Shown here in pieces: positions 17,707 through 36,419 of a stretch of 64,000 nucleotides of DNA. Made by a program: the position numbers and the translations under genes. A model generated the notes under the pieces. The model saw nothing but the letters and a program-made list of their open reading frames with translations. It did not search any database and was not told where the DNA came from. Location of the stretch: contig OX638157.1 of the NCBI GenBank assembly GCA_951804945.1, forward strand, positions 36,456,001-36,520,000. Reading direction: 5' to 3'. Numbering within the stretch: position 1 is the first letter of the stretch; each line of letters starts with the position of its first letter. The stretch comes from Podarcis cretensis. Its lineage: Eukaryota.

Positions 17707-17846
17707 NNNNNNNNNNNNNNNNNNNNNNNNNNNNNNNNNNNNNNNNNNNNNNNNNNNNNNNNNNNNNNNNNNNNNNNNNNNNNNNNNNNNNNNNNNNNNN
17801 NNNNNNNNNNNNNNNNNNNNNNNNNNNNNNNNNNNNNNNNNNNNNN
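17707..17846. other. Assembly gap (140 N) in the NAA15 3' UTR
   Basis: Run of N. Confidence 0.99.
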
Positions 17847-17956: not shown

Positions 17957-20019
17957 ATGTTTTGAAAAAGAGCTGTGTGGCTATAGAATTTGCAAACTGC
18001 TGTCAGAAGAGATGTAGTGCAAGACCAGTGTAACATGAATTACTTACAATAGCTTTTTGTTAGTGTTGGTGAAATCCCACAATGCATAATGCAGCAGTGC
18101 TTGGAGACACTATTTCCCCTTCCTGCCCCTCTTCTCCAATAAAGCTAACCCACAATGGCTGCTGTTGTGAACAGTAATTTGCAACTTGGCAGTAATGGTT
18201 CCGTTCCTAGAGTTAATAGTAAATATCTCTGCAAAATACAACATCTTTATGAAGACTACAAATTTAAATGAGAACTTTTATAAGCTATGAAGTTTGGGAT
18301 AAGAAATCTAAGGCACAGTGTAGAAAATGGTAAAAATAATTTGTAGTATGAGAAACTTGACAGTTGACACTTCATGGTTTTCACTGCTGTACATCTCTTT
18401 AGAGAGATCATTACTCTTTCTGTGATAAGAAAAAATGTTAAAGGAAAGTATTGACTTGTCATTCATCTAGAGCCTTGCCCTTTTGGCATATATACATCTC
18501 TGAACAAAAGAAGTTTGTCATAACTTTGTGTTAACTGTACTACAATATTTTCATGGACTAATATTTCCAAGAAAATAATTTTGCTGTCTGCTACTGAGAC
18601 ACTCTGCTACGTTACATTCAAACCAAGAGCTGAATATCACACCTAGTCTGCAAATATTCAGTGTTACCTATCTGGAAACCTTAGTATCCTATGTGCTTGT
18701 TTTTCTTCCCCTTAACTTAGCCACTTTATTATCCTGCAACCCTTCAGGAAATACTTGCTGTAGTCATGATATTCCATGGAAACTACTCTAGAATTAGCCC
18801 TATTGTCTTTCAGGATGCCACATTATTTCTAAAGTGCTCTGCTAAGAGATGGGCTTGGGTTAATAATTTACACCTTTGTTTTTCCTCTTCCAGTGATAGT
18901 TGGTCAACTAAAACTCTCTTAAGTGCTGAGATCTTACAACATAGATCACTCATTTGTGGCTTTTGTTTTTAGCAAGGATAGCATGTTTCATTATAGTTAC
19001 AACTGTGTGATCTTGCAGTGACATAAATTTTGGAGGTAGGTATATAGTGGGTATCATATACACATAAAAAGTCACAGTAATCTGGTCATTACTATTTAAG
19101 CAGCACGCATGCACACCTTTTGTAGTGGGTCATTAAAAAATTATCAGTGTAACCTATAGGAAGGCAAAACCAAGGCAGCCCAGAGGCATAATAATCATGC
19201 TGGTCTACTTGGAAACACATTTCACTGATTTTGGTGGTACTTGCTCTGTTGTAAGCAAGTATAGGGTTGTGTTAGGTTTTTTAAAATATATTGTCCACTT
19301 AAGCAGGCAGAGGAGCTGAGCAAGGGGTGGTGCTCCATTGCACTTTGACCCCCTGAGAAGCAAAATTAATTATGCAAAACAAGTGAAGATGGACAAAGTT
19401 GCTGGGTTTTTAGAAAAAGGAATATGAGGAGCTTGGAGGAGGGTTTCTGCTGAAAAGCACTGGCTCCAGCAGGAAAATAGAGAACAATATGTAAATAGAA
19501 GCTACTGCTCAAAGGCTCATGTATTGCCCAGGATAGCTGATCTTTGCCATGAGCTGGAACTACAGGTAAAAAATAAGACACTGTTCCTGCATCTTTTATA
19601 ACTCTGTAGAAGGGCGATTCAGCAGGTTGACCTGAAGTTTCCTTTTTGGCAGCTTCCTACCAGTACCGAAATTCACTCTCCTATCTACCCAGCTGTTTAA
19701 AGGCGCAAGAGCGTGGTCTACTTTTTCACCCTTTTCCATCAGTTGTGGGAGCAACAGATCTTTGCTAGGAAGAGCCCTGTTGGTCCAGTGCCCAGCCGGA
19801 AGCTGATGTTCATGGCTTTCCCCACAGCTAATGCCAGAGGCGCTGCAAGTTTTAAAGCTTGGTCTGGGGGGGAATTGGCTTTTCTGGGAACTTTCTGCCC
19901 ATCAGTCTCGCCGGGTGACTCCCGCTTGTATATCTGGGGACGAGAGAAAGAGACAGCCAGGGGTGGGAAGCGCTCTTGTACTGAGGAGACTGGCACGAGC
20001 TTAGCGCTGACCAACAATG

Positions 20020-20830
20020 ACAGCCAGATGGCCGCTGCCGCCCCCAACCCGCCATTTAAAGCCGCGTCCATAACATCCCACTTCTCGCGAGCTTTCGTGT
20101 TCCCGTCGTCCCTGTTTCCCCCCCGCTGAGGCGACCGGAAACGCCCCTTTCCACGGCCTCGCCTATCAGGCCCGGCCTATGCCGCGAAAGGGGCGGAGCT
20201 GTTCCTCCTACGTGGCTTAACACGCGTGAAGCGGCAGCCGCCGCCCTTAGGTGCGGAAGCGAAGCGGTTTGTCAGGGAGGGGGGAAATGGGCACGCGCGA
20301 GCGAGCGACGGGGGCGCGCGGGCCTTTTTCTCCTCCCTGCCGCGACGCGAATCCCTCCGCCAGGTTGGGCCGGAGCGACTAAGCCGCGAGGGACTCGGCG
20401 CAGCGGAAGGCGCCTTCGCGGGCCCGGAGGATATGGCGGCGGCCGAGGTGGAGTCGTCGCTGGAGCTGAGCCTGTCGAGCAGCTACGCGGGGCCGGGGAC
20501 GTTGCCCCCCGCGCGCTCCCGCATCTTCAAGATCATCGTCATCGGGGACTCGAACGTGGGCAAAACGTGCCTCACTTTCCGCTTTTGCGCGGGCCGCTTC
20601 CCGGAGCGCACCGAGGCCACCATCGGGGTGGATTTCCGAGAACGCGCCGTCGAGATCGACGGGGAGCGCATCAAGGTGCGGAAAACCGAGGTCGCCTCCT
20701 CGGGCTGCTTTTTCCCTGCCAGGCTCAGGGGCTGTTCTGCCGGCTGCCTTGCAGCTGGCGCGTGGTAGATGCAAAGTGCAGGTGTGTGCAGAAAAGGCAG
20801 GTCCTTTGCCTCGGCAAGCGACGTCTGCTG
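20020..20830 (+). promoter_or_regulatory. CpG-island promoter and first exon of RAB33B
   Basis: Abrupt GC/CpG enrichment. GC box GGGGCGGAG (~20190), ETS cores CCGGAA (~20136) and GCGGAAG (~20253), palindrome CACGCGTG (20221-20228), BANP/Kaiso-like TCTCGCGAGC (20083-20092), YY1-like ATGGCGGC overlapping the start codon. Confidence 0.85.
20433..20675 (+). CDS. RAB33B: RAB33B coding exon 1
   Basis: [45 protein letters not shown]...DGERIK. Confidence 0.95.
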
Positions 20831-22615
20831 AGATTTCCTCTGCTGCAATACTGTTATAGCTGCAGGTGGCGAAAGATTCCTGCACTGCCGCGGGTTGGAC
20901 TACATGACCCTCGTGGTTCCTTCCACGAGGGTCATCTTATACCAGGCCACCTGGCAGAACAGAAGTGGGCAACTCCAGTCCTGTTGCTCATCCATGCTGT
21001 GTGGAGCTGACACACGGTCATTTGTTATACTTGTATCTCAGCTGCTTCCCCTGAATCAAGATTTGTGTTTGCAACAACCTGAGTAAGGTAACTTGAGGAA
21101 GCCCCTGGTGAGCTTCATCGCTGAGCCCTATAGTTGCACCTGTAAACATTCTGTTAGTTGCACCTCTGAGCCCCTTGGTCTAACTAACTGTTGTTCATGT
21201 GCTGAGTGCTGAACATGTATTAACATCACACAGTTTTGAAGATGTGCTCATATTTAGTCAAACCTGTGGCCTATTGCATCTCCTTATCCTAGTGTTTAAA
21301 TAAGCTCACAAAAGTTTGCAGACACACAACGCTAGTTTGTTACGGCCTTGCAGAATTCTCCATCCCACCTCTAGCAACATGTGGTTTCTATGCTGGGTGC
21401 AGAGAGGTAGAGCTTCCATGCAACCAGCTGCATGGAATTCCTGGTTACCAGCTAGTGCTTACCGTATTTTTTGCTCTATAAGACTCACTTTTTGCCTCCT
21501 AAAAAGTAAGGGAAAATGTGTGTGTGTCTTATGGAGCGAATGCAGGCTGCACAGCTATCCCAGAAGCCAGAACAGCAAGAGGGATTGCTGCTTTCACTGT
21601 GCACCGATCCCTCTTGCTGTTCTGGCTTCTGAGATTCAGAATATTTTTTTCCTTGTTTTCCTCCTCCAAAAACTAGGTGTGTCTTATGGTCTGGGGCATC
21701 TTATAGAGCGAAAAATACGGTAAATGGAAAGTTGTGTCATCCTTATACATGTACAGTATGTTAAGCAATGACACCTCTGCTTTTTAATTGAAATGTAAGC
21801 ATGCTGATTTTTAAATCACATAGATCCTAATTAAACTTAATTCTCCTCTCACAATGTGAATTTCTTGGCAAGCTCTTAATTCCTGCAATACCTTCATCTA
21901 CAGTAAAAGACACACAATTACTAATATTTAGTATAACTGTTTTTGAAAAGCTGATGTATAAAAAGGTGTTTGCAGGAAGCTTCACAGCAAAAGTTTTCAT
22001 TTATGTTTTGTTGCCGTTGCTGAGATATAAAACCACTGACCTCAAACACCCTCATGAACAGAAATCATAGCAATATAAAAGTACTGTTGAGTTAAAGTTG
22101 AAATTATGTCTTTCCACCAGCATGAGTGAAATCATTTTTTTTTCTTGTTTCTCTCCCCTTCTCGGTACATCTAGATTCAGCTCTGGGATACAGCAGGGCA
22201 GGAGCGATTCAGGAAGAGCATGGTACAGCACTATTACAGGAATGTACATGCAGTCGTTTTTGTATATGATATGACAAATATTGCCAGTTTCCATAGTTTG
22301 CCACTGTGGATCGAGGAATGCAAACAACACTTGCTCACCAATGATATACCCCGGATTTTGGTTGGAAATAAATGTGATCTGAGAAGTGCAATTCAGGTCC
22401 CTACGGACATGGCTCAGAAATTTGCTGACACTCACAGCATGCCACTGTTTGAAACATCTGCTAAAAACCCTAATGACAATGATCATGTGGAAGCCATATT
22501 TATGACCCTGGCTCATAAGCTCAAGAGTCACAAGCCACTCATGCTTAGTCAGCTACCCGATAACACAATTCACTTAGAACCTGCAGTAAAACCCGCCATG
22601 CCATGTTGGTGTTAG
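20433..22615 (+). CDS. RAB33B: Ras-related protein Rab-33B (227 aa, 2 coding exons)
   Basis: join(20433-20675,22175-22615); AAG|gtgcgg donor and ctag|ATTCAG acceptor. G-box motifs [27 protein letters not shown]; C-terminal CWC (CXC prenylation). Synteny with NAA15/SETD7. Confidence 0.97.
21462..21720. mobile_element. Tc1/mariner (pogo/Tigger-like) MITE in the RAB33B intron
   Basis: TA|CCGTATTTTTTGCTCTATAAGA ... TCTTATAGAGCGAAAAATACGG|TA; 22-bp TIR with 1 mismatch. Confidence 0.88.
22175..22615 (+). CDS. RAB33B: RAB33B coding exon 2
   Basis: [27 protein letters not shown]...PAMPCWC*. Confidence 0.96.
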
Positions 22616-26077: not shown

Positions 26078-26713
26078 TGCTAGCAAGTAAAATTCTGCTT
26101 TTGTCTCATTTTTCCCCACTGTAATTGCCTGTCAGTTAGAAACATTCACATTGTTATGAGTGTTGTGAAGCTTCCATGTCCTGAAAGATTCTTGCTTGCC
26201 TCAGGCAGCTACACCTATGGCTATTTAAAAAGTGTTTTATTTCTGGAGTTATATGTGTATTTGTCTTTAAAAAATGAATCTGTGGAAGAGAACCAATGGG
26301 CAAGATGGGATATGTTCAAATTGATTTCTTTAGTTTAGGCCAGATGGAGCATATGATATGAAAGCTGATGCCTCTTTAATGAAATACTAATTCCATACAA
26401 AACACAATCCATAAATTCTAACAGGGGGCATTGGTGAAATCATTGGAGTAGAGTGCATTGGCTAATATTCACAGTATTTAGCTGCCCACTCTTTGCTTTC
26501 TGTGCTAGCAGTGAAACCAGTTATCACACGGAATCTTATGGTTTCTGCACACCATTCTCATTTGAACAAGCAAATTTGCATTTGGAAGACTCATTTGCCC
26601 ATGACAATTTTTCTGGTTCAAAGGATGCTTGCTATTATTGAAGATTCTATTACACAGCAGGAGTCAAATAAACACCATGGGGCTAAATTAAAATTTATGA
26701 AAATAGAATTAAG

Positions 26714-26719
26714 TTTATT
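26714..26719 (-). terminator. Candidate polyadenylation signal of the MS4A-like gene
   Basis: Minus-strand AATAAA about 155 nt after the stop, preceded by TGTA and followed by a T-rich tract. Confidence 0.55.
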
Positions 26720-26874
26720 AACTGTACAGAAAATAGGTCACCAGTCTTGAAATTCTGAGGATCTCTTCAGAGTGGTCAGTCATTTCTTAACTTTTAAGAA
26801 TTGTACAAACGTCTCAGTAACGTTCTTAAGTTATAAAGAGCTTTTTAAAAAACTTATTCTCCTAGAATTTATAT

Positions 26875-26978
26875 TTAAGTCATCCTGATATACGGAGGTG
26901 GTTTGGGCATATCATCATCAGCTTCCATAACTAAATCTGAAAGTTTTACAGGAGAATTAAAAATTGTATCCACTTGAC
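26875..26978 (-). CDS. MS4A-like gene last coding exon (not in ORF track)
   Basis: gttttctattctag|(G)QVDTIFNSPVKLSDLVMEADDDMPKPPPYIRMT*; phase matches the previous exon. Confidence 0.8.
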
Positions 26979-29900
26979 CTAGAATAGAAAACACACAGTG
27001 AGCATATGTAGCTGCAGAAAGCAAACTTTGCCTTGATTACATGTGCTAGTTACATGCAGACTAGACTATTGTAATACACTGGTTGTACATGGGGCTGCCT
27101 TTGAAAATGGTTTAGAAACTTCCACTGCTGCAGAAGGCAGCTGCCCAGATTCTTGCAGGGATCAGGCATTGGGAACACCTAATACCCATATTTTACCAAT
27201 TGCATTATCTGCCAATTCATTTCTGTGCCCCATTTAAAGGACTGGTTTTGACACTTAACCTAGCCCTAGACAATGTAGGGCTTTATTTGAAGGACAGCCT
27301 ACACTCTCAGAAATCTGCCCAGGACGGAACATTGGCTTCAGAGGCCTGGCCTTGGTCCACCATCAGTATCTTATTGTGGGCACCAATGAGACATATTTTT
27401 CTGTCTTCCTCCCAAGGAATATTACCAGGGCTTTATTTTTTAATTTTTTCTGTTCTACCCCACTATTGATTAAAAGAGCTATGTTGGGTTTTACAGTTCA
27501 AAATTAATAAGAACAAATTAAACTAAAACCAGCAGTAAAGTAATGTGCTGGATTTTATTTTTAACCACTACTGCCTAGTTTTTGTAATTGTAGTTAGATT
27601 GCTTTTATGGAAATGGCTTTTAATTATTATGATGATTTTAAATAATATTTATATAGCCCAAATGTCTTCCTTACATATTCATTATTTGACTTACATATTT
27701 AGTAAATCCGAAATTAATTTTCAAGTAAAACAGTGAGAACACCTACATACCAGATGGAATGCAAACTAATTCCGCAATTTGTAGCTGGTCTTCATTAGAT
27801 TCTAGCCGTTCCTAAGAATGAAAGCATGAGATTGCTAAATAGGTTCACCTGAGAATAGCACTGATCTTAGAATGTGCAGTCTTCGAGACAAAAACGGTTT
27901 CATTTTGGAATTTGGCTACCAAAAGTAATTGCAATGGTATAATAATGAACAAGACTAAAAATAAAAAGTTCTGCAGTTCAAGAAAAAGAAGCTATTCGTC
28001 GTATAATGCCCAAGACAGTTTACCGTATTTTCCTTTACAAAAGTATTTCTTAATTTTTTTGCAGCTACCATCATCATAATTAAGATATTTATTTCAAACC
28101 ATTTACATTTAATAAACCTGATAACAAGCTGAACAAACATATCTAAGAGATGCATAAATATGGCACTTATCAAACAATGAGAGGTCATCCTTAGAAGTGG
28201 TAAATGCTACATAATTGACAAATCTTAAACACAAGCGGTGGCATTCACTCAGGGTACACTGACTGAAATTAATGGAACTTATTTAGTCAAGTTCATTAAT
28301 TTCAAAGGATCTACTCTGAATTAAACTTAGCTGAATACCACCCATAGAACTGTGAACCTAGTAAAAAACATTTCATGCACAGACCTGTCAAGAAAAACAT
28401 GCAGAAGGGGCAGTTATATACAATTTATACCCCACTCCTTAGGAAGTGCACAGAAGCTTATATAAGGATGGCAGTTATTTACCATCAAGCACTGATGAGG
28501 TTCATAGTTGTTTAGTGTATACAGTGCTATAATATGAGGTGTCCACAAATCATTTTTTTCCAAATGACAATTCAAAAAATTAGTTTTGTGTGCATTTTGG
28601 GCTTAACTAGTTGAAGAGGGGTGGGTTAAGGAAATACGGCAACGTCATATCAAACTGTCCAAAAATGTTTTTACAGAATCCCAAAAGGCTTTCCTTCCCA
28701 GTACAAGACAAGTAAACCCACCATTTTTAATGGCAATGTTGCTACTTACAAGTCCAGTGACACTGTCATAGCATGAACAACGTGGAAGACTTCGGCAACT
28801 CAAATAAGCAATAATCAGCACAATAAAAGCACTGAAAAGCGATGCAATCAGTAGTGTGATGTTGGCTCCTTCTACAAGTTTACCAAGCACAAATGCCTGC
28901 AACACAGAAAATGAGCACACACACCCTTTATCCAACCTTAGAAGTGGTGTGGGTATCGTTTTTAAAACACCTGGACATTCTCTTTTTTATATTTTAATTA
29001 TTTTACATGAAAAGGAATGACAAGTGAAAAACAACAATAAATAGTAATTGATAAATAGTTGAGGAACCACGTATATGATTTATACATATATACAAACTGA
29101 TGGTGTCAATTAATATCCTCAAATTGGGTGGATAAAATGAAAGTAATATATATAAGGCAGACCAAACCCTGATCTGCCCCCAGTGCCTGTGCCAGTAGGA
29201 GGCATCCTTTACTATGGAACTCCCAACAATACCTGCCATAAAAGGCATTTCAGGACCAAGAAGGGAGCAGAGTTGAGCCATCCAATGATTTTGCCTCTGC
29301 TGTGCCAGCCTGGACCTTGTTCAGTAAAGAAACACACAGAGATTTTCCTGCACCATCTTCTGCCCTAACTGATGTGAGTGACAGACCTTTGGGTGTGCTA
29401 GTTACTCTGTCGCTCCTAAACTGTGTGCAATGTATTCAAAAGGGCAGAAACTGGATAGTTTGATACTTACAACGGCTGGGTGATGATAAGAGGACACATT
29501 GTCAAACTCTTCATATTTTTCACCATACTCTAATGTTATAGACGTATAGATGATTACAAGTAGAGTGACGAAGCAGGAAAATACAGAAGCAATTATCATT
29601 GCATTCACCTGTACAAAAGGTATGGGGATAGAGAAGACCAGAGTTAAATTTGGGCTTCAAGTCAAAGGATGAAAAATAGTTCCACATATGCCTCTTATGC
29701 AATCTTTGTACACTACAGTAATTTATTTTCCAGAGTGTCTTTGAGGGAACATGCATTCACAATACAATTTCCGAAATGTGGGTATGAATCAGTGAAAATC
29801 AAACCTTTGCTTTCCCAATTACTGTAAATGGAAATCAACATACTTATATTTATATTTCATCTTGTGTTTTTAGGGAGTGTGTGAAGGTGTCTGATGTTTT

Positions 29901-32900
29901 AAGCCTATTCCCACACATGCCTTTCTTGGAAGCAAGATCAATTTAAATGTATGGGACTTTCTTAGAAGCAATAAAGCTGCCAGAAAGAATACATTTGAAC
30001 AAAAAGTACTGAGCAAAGATATCTGTGGATTTGGGCAATCAACAGAAGGGATGTTACCAAGGCAGCCAAGAAACCAAATAGGTAGAAACCATTCAGATTT
30101 TCTAGGAAAGCAGCATAGTGGATCAAAATAAGTTAAGTGGGGAATGTTGTGCTGCATTCATTAGAAAGAGATTGGCTGACCCAGCTGCTGGTCTGGTCTG
30201 TTCCACTTCTGAGTGAGCAAAGGACCCCTCCAGGAATCACACAAAATCACACAATTTGACATTACCATCCAGTCTAGATTTGAGAAGGTGATGGTGACCA
30301 GTTGCAGCAGAAAAAAGATGGTCAGCTGCTGTGTTTTCCCAGCAGGTTTTAGGCTTAACTAAGACCCATTTCTACTTCAGCCATTACAATCATCACCCAA
30401 GGTCAGTTAATGCTCAAAGTATGGATGATGTGCATGAATCTTTTAAACATCCATGTCTGGGAACTCCAATTATGGGTGTTTAAAAACATGCCCAAAAACT
30501 ACCATTGTGCTTGCTATGTAAAGGGGATTGAAGGCCAAAGGTGGAAAAGGTGGTTAGGAATTTTATTCCCTCCCCTTTAACATAAATAATAATTTTACAT
30601 ATGTATAGATAAAATTTGTGCCGTGTTTTCTAAAACATGTATATTCTTACCTTTCAACTGTAATGTGTTACTACAATCCAGCCATTTGGAGCAACACAGA
30701 GAGAATGATTGATGAATTTAGAGACAGACTGAAGAAATTTTGAACTGCTGTTGAAGTGGTCCTCCTTGAGACCTTTAATCTGTTGTGGTTTTTAAACTCT
30801 AAACCCCAAAATCGTACATGTATGATCACTTTAATTGTAGCCTATGATGTATATCTCCAAACACTTCAGGGCAGAGATTAAAGTTTGTTGTTGCTTTTTG
30901 TTGGCCTCCATCTGTCTCGAGGGACAATGGAGTGTGCCTTCGGGGGTGAAGTCAAACCACTGTGCAGCACCAAAGTGACCTCCCAGGGGTGCAAGCCTGG
31001 GCAGTGTGTATGGGGGTCCTGGGCTACCCATATGATAAGAACCTCCATCTCAGCCTTGTTGATGTGGTCCCAAATGAAAGTAGAGCAATATGTTTGGCAC
31101 CAACGTGGCTGCAAGAGTTGCTGGAAGGAGGCATACAAGGTGCCATCCAACCATCTTAGGGACTCCACTCCAGATTTTTGTAGAGTTTACTCTTTAGCCT
31201 TTTCTTTTCCCAAATATACCCTGCAAAGCAGCAGACATTTAGGATCAGAGTTTTCCTTCTCCTAGATGGGCTACTTTCCCATGTTGATGAGCCCCATCTG
31301 CCCCACAGACATGAAGTAAAAGTTATGTAAATAAAAGGTGTATGTATTTATTACTTATAGAAAGTCGGCTGTATGATTTGTCCCCATCCACTTTAAACAA
31401 AATACAATAGAAACATACCAAAACAGGATTCTTTCTCATTGAAGAAAACAAAGCCATAATTCCAGGAATAGCCATAAACTACAAAACAAAAGGTAAAGGG
31501 GATTAAGTTGGGGGGCAATGCCCAACTTTAGCATATAAAAAGAAGTGAAAAAACATTAACTTCAGGAAGATGAAAACAAACTACAGGTTTTATTTTATAG
31601 TTTTAACTGATTTTTACTTTTTTGTTACATCCCCGTAAACCACTTAGATATGATTGTAGTTAAGCAGTGTATAAATATACGGTAAATACACTGGTTGGCA
31701 AGTGGTTTCTAAGACACCAGCTCCCGATCAACAACCAGCAGATCTATGAAGCACAAAGGCTGAACGTGGTTTATTCCATAGTAAGTAAACATCTTTCCTT
31801 TAGGCACGATTTCAGAGAAGGTCATTTTGACACCAGAGAGGGAACGTAATTGTTCAGCTGGCTGTTAAACGTGGGCTGGAGATTCTTGGTCAATTTCACC
31901 AGATGCTTTTTCTTATATAGGTGAAAATGTGATTGACACATGAGGATAGTAAAGTAATCGACAGCTATCAGATCACTAGCCCGCCATGCTACAAGGGCAA
32001 GGAGTTGGGTATGTGAAACACACAAAGGAGGCATATTAGATGTGCACCTTTCAAAGTGTAAATCATACTTTCACCCATTGCATTTCTAACATTAGCTTGG
32101 GACCCAAGAAAAGAAAAAGTAAAAAAAATATTACAGCAAAGTGATTGTACCATAGTAAAATGCTGCCACTAAATTATTTGAAGTCACTACTAACAATCCC
32201 AGCTTCTTCTTGCTTGTAGCATCACCACCACAGCTCCCATGTACCACCCTAAAATAGTGTTTGTAATTACTACAATCAGCTAGTATAATCTGAACAGTTC
32301 AGCTTCTGCAATGCAATTTTCTCCCGGAAATCATTCACTTTTCTCAGTCCTGTTCTCCCCTCCTGAGGTAAAGTAGAGGTCCTACAAGTATCATCCACTC
32401 TCCCAATTAGCCCCACCCACTCAAAACACCAGCTTCACCTATGGGTGCCCCCTCCTTTCAACTTCACTAGCTAAATGAAATCTCCATGTTCAAAAGCAAA
32501 ATATTTCTGAATATCAAATGTGGAAAACAAACATGTCCCCCTCGTAAGTTCCTGCAGGCAAAAATGTAAGACAGTGCCGTCTTGTTATCAGCCCCACAAT
32601 TATGGAATTTCTTCTAACTCACAATTTGAGTTTTCAGCCCCAGGTGAAGAATCACTTATTTGCCCAGGCTTTTGGAGGCATCTACTACACTGTTGATTTG
32701 GATTTCTATTGGTTTTAATGTAACCTGCTTAGGGTTTGCCTTGGCATTTAAGAACAGGTGGGAAATAGTTTAAATATATAAACAGAAAAAACTTCCCATT
32801 GGCATTTGACTGGCCACAGCTGGAAATGGAGCACTGGAGAAGATGGAGATAAGCAACTAGCCTAAGACCACAAGCCATATGAAGTGCAAACACCATAAAT

Positions 32901-33795
32901 CATTTCCCCCTTCCAGTTATTTTATCTCCAAAAAACATTAAATTCTCCTATGTTTCCCAGGAGAAAGAAAAGTCCTCATTCTTCTCTCACCCAGACCAGT
33001 CCAGAGCATTCCTTCTGTGAGCCCGATCTTCAGCTCCCCCACTTCCAAATTGAGGAGATGCAAGTCAGATATCAAAGGCAGCTGCAGTCACACTTGCCCT
33101 CTAGGCCAGGCTTCCTCAACCTCAGCCCTCCCATGATCCTTAGCTAGCAGGACCAGTGGTCGGGGATGATGGGAATTGTAGTCTCAAAACATCTGGAGGG
33201 CTGAGGTTGAGGAAGCCTGCTCTAGGCTCTTACCACAAAACAACTAGGCCAGCACTCAGGGACGGCCCAAGGTGTTTCAGCACCTGAGACCAAATGCTCT
33301 GCTGTCACCCCTGCAATGGGGGAGGGACTCTTTAAGGGCATATTCTCAGCAACAGGGGTCTCCCAGCGGCTGGGCAAAGCCCCACGACACTGTCCAGCAG
33401 AGGGGGGAGGAGAGATCTGCTGGCTTGTGGAATATAGAACCACAAATTACCTAGAACAGTGAACAAATTCCCTGTATCATACTAAATTGTACAACCCTCC
33501 CTGCTGTACTTCCGAAATCTACTAAATACTTTTTTTATTGCAGCAAGCATTTCAATTGAAATTTGATTTTATAACTTTATACATTGTTAATAAAAAGGGT
33601 GTGTAGGGGGATAGAGTTTATATAGCTTACCACTCCAGCCCAGATGGGTATCCTAGATTTGCTCAGTGCTGAGTCCCTTCTGAAAGCACCATCAATTAAT
33701 CCACCGATGATACAAACTGTAGCACAAGCTATCTGGAGGAGCCCCAACAGAACCATACTTTTCTGATTGAAGATGAAATATCTGTAGCGATCCAT
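26875..33795 (-). CDS. Uncharacterised four-transmembrane CD20/MS4A-like protein, 224 aa, 6 coding exons, C-terminal PPPY motif
   Basis: complement(join(33795-33631,31478-31419,29608-29471,28896-28750,27811-27751,26978-26875)) = 165+60+138+147+61+104 = 675 nt, an open frame ending TAA. All introns are GT-AG with strong donors (gtaagc, gtatgt, gtaagt, gtaagt, gtatgt) and pyrimidine-rich acceptors; phases 0,0,0,0,1. Four hydrophobic segments, with LGLLQI and PIWAG motifs resembling CD20-family TM1/TM2. Confidence 0.88.
27040..27350 (+). mobile_element. Degenerate L2 LINE fragment
   Basis: LVTCRLDYCN motif and LHYLP...FKGLVLT, typical of the L2 ORF2 C-terminus. Confidence 0.7.
27751..27811 (-). 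CDS. MS4A-like gene coding exon 5 (61 nt, not in ORF track)
   Basis: ctttcattcttag|ERLESNEDQLQIAELVCIPS(G)|gtatgt. Confidence 0.8.
28750..28896 (-). CDS. MS4A-like gene coding exon 4
   Basis: tttctgtgttgcag|AFVLGKLVEGANITLLIASLFSAFIVLIIAYLSCRSLPRCSCYDSVTGL|gtaagt. Confidence 0.87.
29471..29608 (-). CDS. MS4A-like gene coding exon 3
   Basis: ttttgtacag|VNAMIIASVFSCFVTLLVIIYTSITLEYGEKYEEFDNVSSYHHPAV|gtaagt. Confidence 0.88.
30885..31305 (+). mobile_element. Interspersed repeat, possibly an RTE-clade LINE 5' region
   Basis: Contains gttttccttctcctagatgggctac...gatgagccccatctgccc, which resembles RTE-family 5' sequences; assigned by recollection only. Confidence 0.35.
31419..31478 (-). CDS. 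MS4A-like gene coding exon 2 (60 nt, not in ORF track)
   Basis: ccttttgttttgtag|FMAIPGIMALFSSMRKNPVL|gtatgt; completes TM2. Confidence 0.85.
33107..33219. mobile_element. hAT MITE with perfect 25-bp TIR and perfect 8-bp TSD
   Basis: CTCTAGGC|CAGGCTTCCTCAACCTCAGCCCTCC ... GGAGGGCTGAGGTTGAGGAAGCCTG|CTCTAGGC. Confidence 0.92.
33631..33795 (-). CDS. MS4A-like gene coding exon 1 (exon acceptor at 33821)
   Basis: tttgaacag|acgtgg...gaaATGG (strong Kozak); MDRYRYFIFNQKSMVLLGLLQIACATVCIIGGLIDGAFRRDSALSKSRIPIWAGV|gtaagc. Confidence 0.88.
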
Positions 33796-36419
33796 TTCAG
33801 CTAATCCACCAGTTGCCACGTCTGTTCAAATTGGGAAGAAGCACGGAGGTTGTTCAAGAGAAGGCTGCCCTTGTGGGTTTTCCTGAACAGAAGATGCAAG
33901 AAAACTCATAAGCACTTCAACAAGCATCATCTGACAAATTGTTCACATGCCTTTCCATTAATAGTATGGACAATCTTCCAATATCCAGACGCATTAAGCT
34001 TTGGATTCTCTGCATATGGAGAGAGCTGGACATCTTTATCCAGTAAATATGTAATTAGAAAACATAAACAAAAACTTAAATGGGCTGGGATGATGGCATT
34101 TTTTAAAAAAACAAAGACATATTTATATCTTTAGGAGATCCCTATATTTGATATCAATATAGAAAACATGGAACTTTCAGGTTTAAAATATACTGATGCA
34201 AAACTCAAATAGTTCATTTGTACCCATGTTTCCAAATAACAAAAGACAAAAGCAAACAAAATTCCAAATAATACAGATTTCTTATCTTCACACTTCCATT
34301 ATATGCAATAGATATCACCAGAAAAATACATTAGAGTTTTAAAAAATGAGAGAATCTGCAGATACAAGACTGTCAAGAAGAAATAGTTCTGTGCTTGCTG
34401 TGTGTTTGAGCCTTCCACCACAGTTTTGCTCTAGAGAATGGCTGGAAACAGATTTGCAGCTGAAAGGTCAGAGAGCACTGTGAGTTGGCTGAAGAATATT
34501 GAAGTACAGACTCTCTTGGGAGATTTGGTGTAAGATAATGGATAATGCTATGAAAGAGCACCTGTTTGCCTTCATTTCTGCTTTGCTTTTAGCTTGTAAA
34601 TAAGCTAAATATTATGAGGACACCCTCCAGAGCTCTCCTGTTCCAACAAACCCAGACACTGTAGCCATATCCCTGATACTTTTTTGTGGGATAACCAATC
34701 TCATATAACCGACATACTTAAGTCTAATTAATGCATGGAGGGCTTAGCTCACCTTAGAAGCGACTAGGTAATCAAACTTTTGTTTCCCTGCAGTCTACTT
34801 GAGAAGCTCACCATGTGAAGAGATTGCACTGGTCCTGCTCAACCGCATGGCTCTTACAGGACACTCATATTCACATATTAACAGTTTAGGAACTTTCACC
34901 ACTGCAACTAAGCCAGGTTTTACTGCCTGTGCAACCTTTTCTGAATGCTGTATAGAAAAGCACATGAATCTGACCTTTGGAGAGTTTGTAAGTAAACCAT
35001 TTTAACTTACCAAACATGTGGTAGTTTTCTTTGCTAGGAGAAGAGGGGCGTTTTAGAACTCCCAATCACCTATGTTAAAGGTTTAACAGCCTATATTTCC
35101 ATGTTTTACTTAGTGGCATATTTTGTTATTTTAAATCTGCTGAGGTTCTCTCACCGAAGAGTATTTGCCCTAAACTTTATCTTGGCATCCAGGAATTCTC
35201 CGTTCACATATCTATTTTTTCCTTGCACCAACACTTCTCACCACGCAGCAGTGGTGCAGTGAGATAAAGTCTTGTCCCAAGGGCACCACTGCCACTCTGG
35301 GAAGTGCAGTGCCATTATCAATTTTGAGGAATAGTCTTTGATCTAAGGAAAGCAAAGCAGCTGTACTTCTCTTCCTGCTCCTGCCCCATACAAGTGAGCT
35401 ACTGGCAATGGAAATATCTCTGTTAGTCTGTTGCAGGAAACACAAGAGCCTTCTGGCACCTTGAGTATTACCTAATTGACCAAGAAGTCCAATTTCCCCA
35501 CATGTGGCTTGAATTGAAATAATGGGCTATTATTCTCCTTCAAGTGTCAATTAAAGCAAACATTATATATAGCACAACTAACTTGTCATAAGGAGTGCTT
35601 TGTATCTAACCATTTTATGTATGTTTCCAGCATTAATCTTGTCATAGTGTGTATTTTTTGCCATTTCATTTCCCATTTTAACCTGTCTTACAGTTTACCC
35701 TCCTCCACCATACCATACACGTATATAAAAATTATACCTATTCCTGCCAATTTAGGAGAACGTGCATCTGATGAAGTGGACTCAGGTCTGCAAAAGCTTG
35801 GACCATAATATATCCATTAGTCTCCAAGTTGCCACAAGACTTGTTTTGGCACTGGGATGTGAAACTTGCCACGAGAAAGGGCAGCTCCACACTCAAAGGA
35901 TGAATTGTGTGTTGCATAATAGGAGACACTGTTATTGCTGATCTCTCTTGCAGAAAGTCCCCACCACCACCATCGAAAGCTAAGTTTGTGAATAATCCTT
36001 CTTTTTTTTGTTTTTAAAGTGTTTAGATATTTCAGAATCTACAGCTGCAGAATTATTTGTTATGGAACGTGGGAAGTGAAATAATCTAAGAAAGTTCTGT
36101 GTGTGATTGCAAAAGGAGGGGGAAAGTCAGTGGACTTTATACACTTCATGCAGGAGAAGCAGGTGAGAAGAGGGAAGGAGCACTTCAATTTCAGGTGCAC
36201 AGGAAGGGCAATTTATCAAAGCGGAATTCAGCTCGTTTGCTCTCTTTGGAAAGTACCTGGCTGCCTAACCTCAGCTCGCTCGCTCGCTCCCTCCCTCGGG
36301 CAATGAAGAGGAAGTTGGAGAAAGAGGAGACTTGAGCAGTTTGCACCTCAGGGCAACCACAGAGGAAGGAAAGCAAAACATACGCAATCCCAGAGTAGAA
36401 GAGAAAGGCACTTACTTAC

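Follow-up and report, generated by a model that had tools for sequence, protein, structure and literature searches.

FcεRI β (MS4A2), a CD20-like protein, is the auxiliary subunit of the IgE receptor, and channel activity is disputed for the CD20-like family. LAPTM4A, LAPTM4B, LAPTM5, NDFIP1 and NDFIP2 are small multi-pass membrane proteins in which a cytosolic (L/P)PxY motif recruits NEDD4-family ligases and directs endolysosomal sorting. ENTREP/FAM189A2, which contains a CD20-homology region, binds and activates ITCH via WW domains by means of its PPxY motifs and drives CXCR4 to endosomes; PPxY and LPxY are both WW-domain ligands (PMC8811627). In this study, we analyzed a stretch of 64,000 nucleotides (nt) from the lizard Podarcis cretensis (hereafter the window; contig OX638157.1 of assembly GCA_951804945.1, positions 36,456,001 to 36,520,000 of the forward strand), in which a reading made from the letters alone, here called the sequence-only reading, had proposed a hidden gene for a CD20-like membrane protein. 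We conclude with high confidence that this gene is an intact, transcribed lacertid orthologue of vertebrate zgc:113425 (LOC128421083 in Podarcis raffonei and LOC100555997 in Anolis).

The gene consists of six coding exons on the minus strand, running from 33795 down to 26875 of the window. All borders are GT-AG, each acceptor is a pyrimidine tract followed by AG, the phases are compatible, and the reading frame is uninterrupted across all six exons, with a product in the length class of 224 amino acids (aa). The proposed Kozak start, ATG at 33795, stands in the context GAAATGG, and an in-frame TGA is found upstream at 33828. The coding part of exon 1 (33631 to 33795) encodes residues 1-55, comprising the N-terminus MDRYRYFIFNQ, helix 1 with LGxxQI, loop 1 and PxWxG, and is followed by the donor GTAAGC. 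Exon 2 (31419 to 31478), bordered by an AG acceptor and the donor GTATGT, encodes residues 56-75, namely helix 2 and a short cytosolic loop (RKNP). Helix 3 and an acidic, His-containing outer loop 2 are encoded by exon 3 (29471 to 29608; residues 76-121; donor GTAAGT), and an invariant GAN motif, helix 4 and a juxtamembrane Cys box by exon 4 (28750 to 28896; residues 122-170; donor GTAAGT). The Cys-rich box, CRSLPxCxCYD, occupies residues 155-165 (28765 to 28797) directly after helix 4. Exon 5 (27751 to 27811) encodes residues 171-190 and the first base of the Gly-191 codon, a part of the cytosolic tail that includes the conserved ELVC; its donor is G/GTATGT in phase 1, so that junction 5 interrupts the Gly codon (G/GT), and junctions 1-4 are in phase 0. 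The coding part of exon 6 (26875 to 26978) supplies residues 191-224, with an FNSP motif, an acidic stretch and the C-terminal PPPYIRM (residues 217-223; 26881 to 26901), in which PPxY (PPPY, residues 217-220, at 26901-26890) overlaps YxxΦ, and then the stop TAA (26877-26875). The proposed downstream AATAAA was found on the same strand 156 nt 3' of the stop, at 26714 to 26719, and sequences resembling poly(A) signals also occur at 26380 and 26241. All twelve anchor peptides chosen from the model of the sequence-only reading were located at their expected minus-strand places and in the expected order.

For the full-length analyses (Pfam, fold and searches) we used the P. raffonei orthologue P0177 (LOC128421083, XP_053259308, 224 aa), which is 98% identical to the window protein and is its closest match, and the window exons were used singly. 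Compared exon by exon, the window peptides were identical to P. raffonei LOC128421083 at 219 of 223 residues (20/20 for exon 2, 45/46 for exon 3, 48/49 for exon 4, 20/20 for exon 5 and 32/33 for exon 6) and to other lacertids at 214-219 of 223. They begin at residues 1, 56, 76, 122, 171 and 192 of the 224-aa lacertid RefSeq proteins with identical exon placement, and the model of the sequence-only reading reproduces the RefSeq model exactly. When orthologue proteins were compared with the window by tblastn, exactly six colinear matches were obtained (E 1.5e-32 to 2.7e-08 with the P. raffonei query). No second CD20-like copy was detected in the 64-kb window, no further tblastn match being better than E = 1.8; a tandem gene family in the window is thus ruled out.

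Transcript evidence was taken from assembled contigs of small sequencing runs (four studies of two related organisms, none from P. cretensis itself) aligned to 26700-32699; the RNA label of the runs is a guess only. All five predicted junctions were carried by these assembled transcripts. The joints 26978/27751, 27811/28750, 28896/29471 and 29608/31419 were seen in contigs of all four runs, and the skipped intervals are CT..AC on the plus strand, i.e. GT..AG on the strand of the gene; such excised GT-AG introns indicate that the contigs come from spliced RNA. As for the junction of exons 1 and 2, contigs of runs X1 and X10 pass the exon 2 acceptor, and their loose ends at 31479 match the plus strand from 33632. 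The contig depth of the spliced transcripts reached 1854. Introns were also covered, by low-depth contigs that could be pre-mRNA or contaminating DNA. Hence, borders, phases, transcripts and the RefSeq protein agree with the proposed six exons, canonical splice sites, matching phases and intact 224-aa open reading frame (ORF).

Some further features of these transcripts were observed. At the 3' side, contigs of organism A (X1 and X5) stop at 26731 and 26713, near the first AATAAA, and those of organism B (X9 and X10) extend about 270 nt past 26700, toward ATTAAA at 26380; the gene transcripts likely have more than one 3' end. Within intron 2, at 30900-31300 (both strands), the summed contig depth rose sharply in all four runs, to several hundred or more, with peak bins from 329 (X10) to 1753 (X9). 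This stretch was covered by many short contigs that are only 88-95% alike and have irregular joints, and it looks like an abundant transcribed interspersed repeat; no second copy of it was found within the window, and the ORFs of its two strands gave no Pfam match. Exon-skipping isoforms are annotated in lizards, snakes and sharks, in which the dropped residues are whole exons of the present model: residues 56-75 (exon 2) are missing from P0174, P0195, P0203 and P0059, residues 76-120 (exon 3) from P0206, P0209 and P0223, and residues 121-169 (exon 4) from P0011. Exons 2, 3 and 4 are in phase 0 at both ends, and the skipping of any of them keeps the frame and removes one transmembrane helix. 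The isoform that skips exon 2 recurs from sharks to lizards.

Subsequently, the distribution of the protein was examined. A search of 1.84 billion representative proteins with exon 1 returned 41 relatives, 38 of them with E < 1e-10. With the shark protein P0010 and the lizard protein P0121 as queries, 202 and 224 clusters were obtained, respectively, and all of the listed matches (the best 120 of each) bear a precomputed PF04103 assignment. Among the matches listed, orthologues were found in cartilaginous fishes (chimaera, sharks and rays), bony fishes (bichir, sturgeon, gar, bowfin, teleosts and coelacanth) and tetrapods (caecilians, salamanders, frogs, turtles, crocodile, tuatara, many squamates and birds), that is, in every non-mammalian class of jawed vertebrates, which bears out the suggestion that the gene has been kept in reptiles and other non-mammals. 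Among the matches listed, amphibian orthologues were 57-63% and fish orthologues about 50% identical. The 90% cluster of P0177 includes proteins of P. muralis, P. lilfordi, Lacerta agilis and Zootoca vivipara. The protein comparison thus places the window in a lacertid lizard that differs from these four species and from P. raffonei. The orthologues are called "uncharacterized protein zgc:113425" in sharks and teleosts and bear LOC numbers in birds, and RefSeq predictions of the same 224-aa protein already exist for Podarcis, Lacerta, Zootoca and Anolis and for about 200 other clusters, either with LOC numbers or with zgc:113425, which is a zebrafish clone name. The gene model is therefore already public in sister species and across vertebrates, and its recognition here is not the discovery of a new gene. 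The description of the gene as hidden and unnamed holds insofar as it has no described function or paper, but RefSeq predicts the same protein, and the gene was hidden from the ORF track only. Indeed, no paper was found on zgc:113425, XB5734924 or five LOC identifiers of orthologues, the one match being a coincidence with a PubMed number in a reference list, and a literature search for a CD20-like protein together with RAB33B and SETD7 returned unrelated papers only. Several public names are apparently wrong: '50S ribosomal protein L23, chloroplastic' is the name given to the entries of P. lilfordi and Varanus komodoensis, and the orthologue of the frog Leptobrachium is named 'SET domain containing 7' in UniRef, probably from the neighbouring gene, which hints at a conserved position of the gene in another species. 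The entry of the Phrynosoma orthologue is named 'Membrane-spanning 4-domains s...'.

No mammal was present among the best 120 matches of either protein search. Likewise, among the 22 of the 41 exon 1 relatives checked by name or sequence there was none, and those that could be placed were from fish, birds and squamates. Since many mammalian genomes have been annotated and no mammal is among the matches listed, the gene was likely lost on the mammalian stem, as the sequence-only reading had considered possible; the basis for this is absence from protein databases (the best 120 matches). That the gene has no name, paper or known function is most likely because humans and mice do not have it.

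The gene has descended vertically, in one copy, from the ancestor shared by all jawed vertebrates. In a maximum-likelihood tree, squamates, birds, amphibians, ray-finned fishes and cartilaginous fishes each formed one clade with 98-100% support; the crocodile grouped with birds, the coelacanth stood beside tetrapods, the lacertids fell together, and no long branches were seen. The gene tree thus agrees with the species tree, as expected of single-copy vertical descent. The window protein gave a colinear, full-length best match to the zgc:113425 group with the same exon structure. In an alignment of 60 species, 25 columns were invariant and 41 more were conserved in at least 90% of the sequences; the lacertid protein was 45-58% identical to amphibian, coelacanth and fish proteins, and lizard and shark proteins were 51-53% identical. 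At short range, exons 3 and 4 differed from organism A at 4 of 287 positions (1.4%) and the introns at 163 of 4387 (3.7%; one-sided Fisher p = 0.02), and the corresponding values for organism B were 8 of 284 in exons and 78 of 1767 in introns (p = 0.14). The exons contained no indels, and the introns had 68 (organism A) and 42 (organism B) gap letters. This exon-versus-intron divergence test is weak, and the deep 60-species comparison is much stronger. The overall pattern at the sequence level is consistent with a single-copy gene under vertical inheritance and purifying selection.

The protein is a member of the CD20-like family (PF04103), as had been claimed from its motifs. The P. raffonei orthologue matched the Pfam CD20 profile with 79.2 bits against a cut-off of 27.9 (E 4.6e-22; profile positions 2-156 of 156). 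Exon 1 of the window alone matched profile positions 2-39 (E 6.5e-06, 26.7 bits), and exon 3 alone matched positions 61-98 (E 0.017), in the correct order. When a profile of 60 orthologues was compared with solved structures, FcεRI β (MS4A2) was found at E 1.4e-3, with LGxxQI of helix 1 and PxWxG before helix 2 aligned. The AlphaFold model contained four long helices (residues 11-38, 49-69, 73-110 and 119-157), in agreement with the four hydrophobic helices noted earlier, and a short outer loop 2. Its mean predicted local distance difference test (pLDDT) score was 66.8, the means of the helix blocks were mostly 74-93, and the tail from residue 160 was below 50. Foldseek against the PDB returned CD20-like bundles, first FcεRI β (8y81_B, E 1.9e-4, template modelling (TM) score 0.71 on target), then CD20 (6y90_A) and sarcospan. 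In the Atlas structure search, the protein fell in its own cluster, "zgc:113425", and the nearest structural neighbour was a TMEM176 cluster (TM 0.63); the tail alone (residues 158-224) gave no usable match. The model thus predicts a four-helix bundle that folds like CD20 and FcεRI β. By analogy with the known topology of the family, both termini, including the disordered tail of about 65 residues, are assumed to be cytosolic; this orientation is in keeping with the acidic character of outer loop 2 and with the basic residues that follow helix 4.

Conservation among the 60 orthologues was highest on the cytosolic side, i.e. in the N-terminus, the Cys box, the inner loop and the C-terminal end. 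The mean majority fraction was 0.97 for the N-terminus MDRYRYFIFNQ, which has an invariant R-Y-R, 0.85 for the Cys box, 0.83 for the inner loop and 0.77 for the last ten residues; helices 1 and 2 scored 0.73 and 0.78, and outer loop 2 only 0.52. In the Cys box, S157 and P159 were invariant and C155, R156, L158, C161, C163 and D165 were kept in at least 90% of the sequences. The conserved motifs of the tail were ELVC, (R)IFNSP, the acidic stretch and the terminal motif, in which Y220 was invariant and P218, P219 and R222 were found in at least 90%. Both N-glycosylation sequons pointed out earlier, NVS and NIT, are present in the window, but NVS occurs in only 2 of the 60 orthologues and NIT in 34, even though N133 is invariant. 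The NVS sequon is created by the window-specific N112 (codon 29500-29498), where all other lacertids have Asp. Two more residues are specific to the window: R160 (codon 28782-28780), inside the Cys box, is Cys in other lacertids and Arg also in some birds and turtles, and V207 (codon 26931-26929), in the tail, is Asp in other lacertids; the underlying A>T difference at 26930 was seen against all four runs of both related organisms.

We tentatively propose, by analogy with described proteins, that the product may be a small membrane adaptor whose tail recruits HECT ligases and/or adaptor protein (AP) complexes and thereby regulates how it and its partner proteins are sorted and turned over. The helix bundle would lie in the plasma or endosomal membrane, probably next to partner membrane proteins, and the working parts would be the conserved cytosolic ones, namely the N-terminus, the Cys box, the acidic stretch and the terminal (P/L)PxY-x-R-Φ. 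The Cys box (residues 155-165) is probably palmitoylated, which would tune the membrane position, and the terminal motif may be bound by WW domains of HECT ligases of the NEDD4 family, by μ subunits of AP complexes, or by both. In this way the protein would direct its own sorting and ubiquitination and those of its partners, in the manner of ENTREP/FAM189A2, LAPTM4/5 and NDFIP. Among 152 full-length orthologues, the terminal motif was PPxY in 81, LPxY in 32 and xPY in 26, and YxxΦ was present in 147; the 113 sequences with PPxY or LPxY have a candidate cytosolic motif of the kind found in adaptors of NEDD4-family ligases. The signal by which TGN38 binds AP-2 is similar to YxRΦ, and ENaC has PPxYxxL as its extended PY motif. 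Several points weigh against this proposal. Cartilaginous fishes and some others have PAPY, SAPY or PVPY and not the canonical PPxY, so that PY plus YxxΦ is the more universal feature. The tail was modelled at a pLDDT below 50, which leaves the docking surface without structural support, and the extreme C-terminal motif could instead serve SH2 or PTB domains after phosphorylation of the tyrosine. Moreover, the relatives with solved structures work within receptor or glycoprotein complexes, as subunits of these and not as ligase adaptors, and no binding, localisation or phenotype data were found in the literature for any orthologue.

The main alternative explanation is that the protein belongs to a multi-chain surface complex as an auxiliary subunit, in the way of FcεRI β or sarcospan; the bundle would stabilise or chaperone partner chains, and the tail tyrosine would be a phospho-signalling or endocytic signal and not a ligase dock. 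In fold and sequence, the nearest solved proteins are FcεRI β, CD20 and sarcospan, helices 1 and 2 show good conservation, and the invariant N-terminal R-Y-R conforms to the RxR pattern; RxR patterns retain unassembled subunits in the endoplasmic reticulum. However, no partner is known, the identity to MS4A proteins is only 14-20%, and a single tyrosine motif does not make an immunoreceptor tyrosine-based activation motif (ITAM). We regard this explanation as possible but doubtful; it is compatible with the adaptor function, and both could hold. An ion-conducting oligomer or its regulator, as proposed for some MS4A and TMEM176 proteins, would share the CD20-like fold and would be in keeping with the TMEM176 cluster as the nearest neighbour in the Atlas search and with an outer loop 2 rich in Asp, Glu and His. 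Apart from Q21 and N72, however, the helices show no conserved pattern of charged or polar residues lining a pore, and the strongest conservation is cytosolic, which makes ion conduction improbable.

It is harder still to believe that the gene is a decaying or non-functional copy in P. cretensis or a set of chance ORF fragments. Such decay might be read from C160R in the Cys box and D207V, both at sites otherwise constant in lacertids, but Arg at 160 also occurs in some birds and turtles, the frame is open through six exons with canonical splice sites, the relatives' spliced transcripts reach the high contig depths given above, and the protein is nearly identical to its P. raffonei orthologue. 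Chance ORFs or a pseudogene are ruled out by homology, splicing, expression and constraint. Returning to the adaptor proposal, it can be combined with the history of the gene into a wider reading, which we put forward as a conjecture that may well not hold as a whole: the gene would represent a separate, ancient CD20-like lineage, present in the jawed-vertebrate ancestor and lost on the mammalian stem, and would encode a compact adaptor with a PPxY/YxxΦ tail that recruits NEDD4-family ligases and AP complexes and sets the surface level of its partners.

If this is true, a regulatory module exists in all non-mammalian vertebrates and is lacking in mammals. The degree of conservation, with lizard and shark proteins about half identical and the N-terminus nearly invariant, is comparable to that of many well-studied membrane proteins. 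The role of a minimal CD20-like protein with a ligase- or sorting-type tail is tractable in zebrafish, Xenopus and chicken, and the gene also lets one ask what mammals changed on losing it. The annotation value for the P. cretensis genome is routine, as the model agrees with the RefSeq predictions in sister species.

In the surroundings of the gene, NAA15 was identified on the plus strand near 6.7 kb by its NatA auxiliary subunit domain, a two-exon Ras-family gene, the RAB33B of the sequence-only reading, on the plus strand at 20.4-22.6 kb, and SETD7 on the minus strand, with its SET7_N domain at 53.9-54.3 kb. The CD20-like gene shares the strand of SETD7, downstream of which it lies, and is convergent with the RAB33B-like gene; it stands as a single copy between the two, as had been reported. 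The GC-richest part of the window (20000-22000; 0.526) covers exon 1 of the RAB33B-like gene and contains long overlapping ORFs on both strands, which would fit a CpG-island promoter. At 17707-17846 there is a run of 140 N (assembly gap or masked), and no RNA family was found in the window with Rfam.

Finally, the gene and its product were compared with known systems. The public predicted orthologues (XP_053259308 of P. raffonei, LOC114604310 of P. muralis, LOC117053341 of Lacerta agilis, LOC118083416 of Zootoca vivipara, LOC100555997 of Anolis carolinensis and XB5734924 of Xenopus) share with the window gene the 224 aa and six coding exons, with 96-98% identity in lacertids and 45-58% to amphibians and fishes, and differ from it only by species-level substitutions (N112, R160 and V207). 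The MS4A proteins FcεRI β (MS4A2) and CD20 (MS4A1) likewise have PF04103, the four-helix bundle, LGxxQI in helix 1 and PxWxG before helix 2. In contrast to them, the present gene is 14-20% identical, is a single copy flanked by RAB33B and SETD7 outside any MS4A cluster, and encodes a protein that has neither an ITAM nor a long disulphide-bonded outer loop 2 and whose tail ends in PPxY/YxxΦ. Sarcospan has the CD20-like fold and a similar size (fold matches 9c3c_n and 8yt8_S, TM-score 0.61-0.65 on target), but it is 11-13% identical, is a subunit of the dystrophin-glycoprotein complex and is not known to have a terminal PY motif. LAPTM4A/4B/5 and NDFIP1/2 are like the window protein in architecture and proposed action only, their folds and families being unrelated. 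ENTREP/FAM189A2 (with FAM189A1 and FAM189B), which was compared by description only, combines a CD20-homology region with cytosolic PPxY, as does the window protein; however, it has 450 aa and is described as single-pass, and its tail of about 340 aa contains two PPxY motifs separated by 42 aa (PMC8811627), whereas the window protein has four helices, a tail of about 65 aa and one terminal motif, PPPY, and thus does not show the long tail with two spaced PPxY motifs of the ENTREP/FAM189 proteins.

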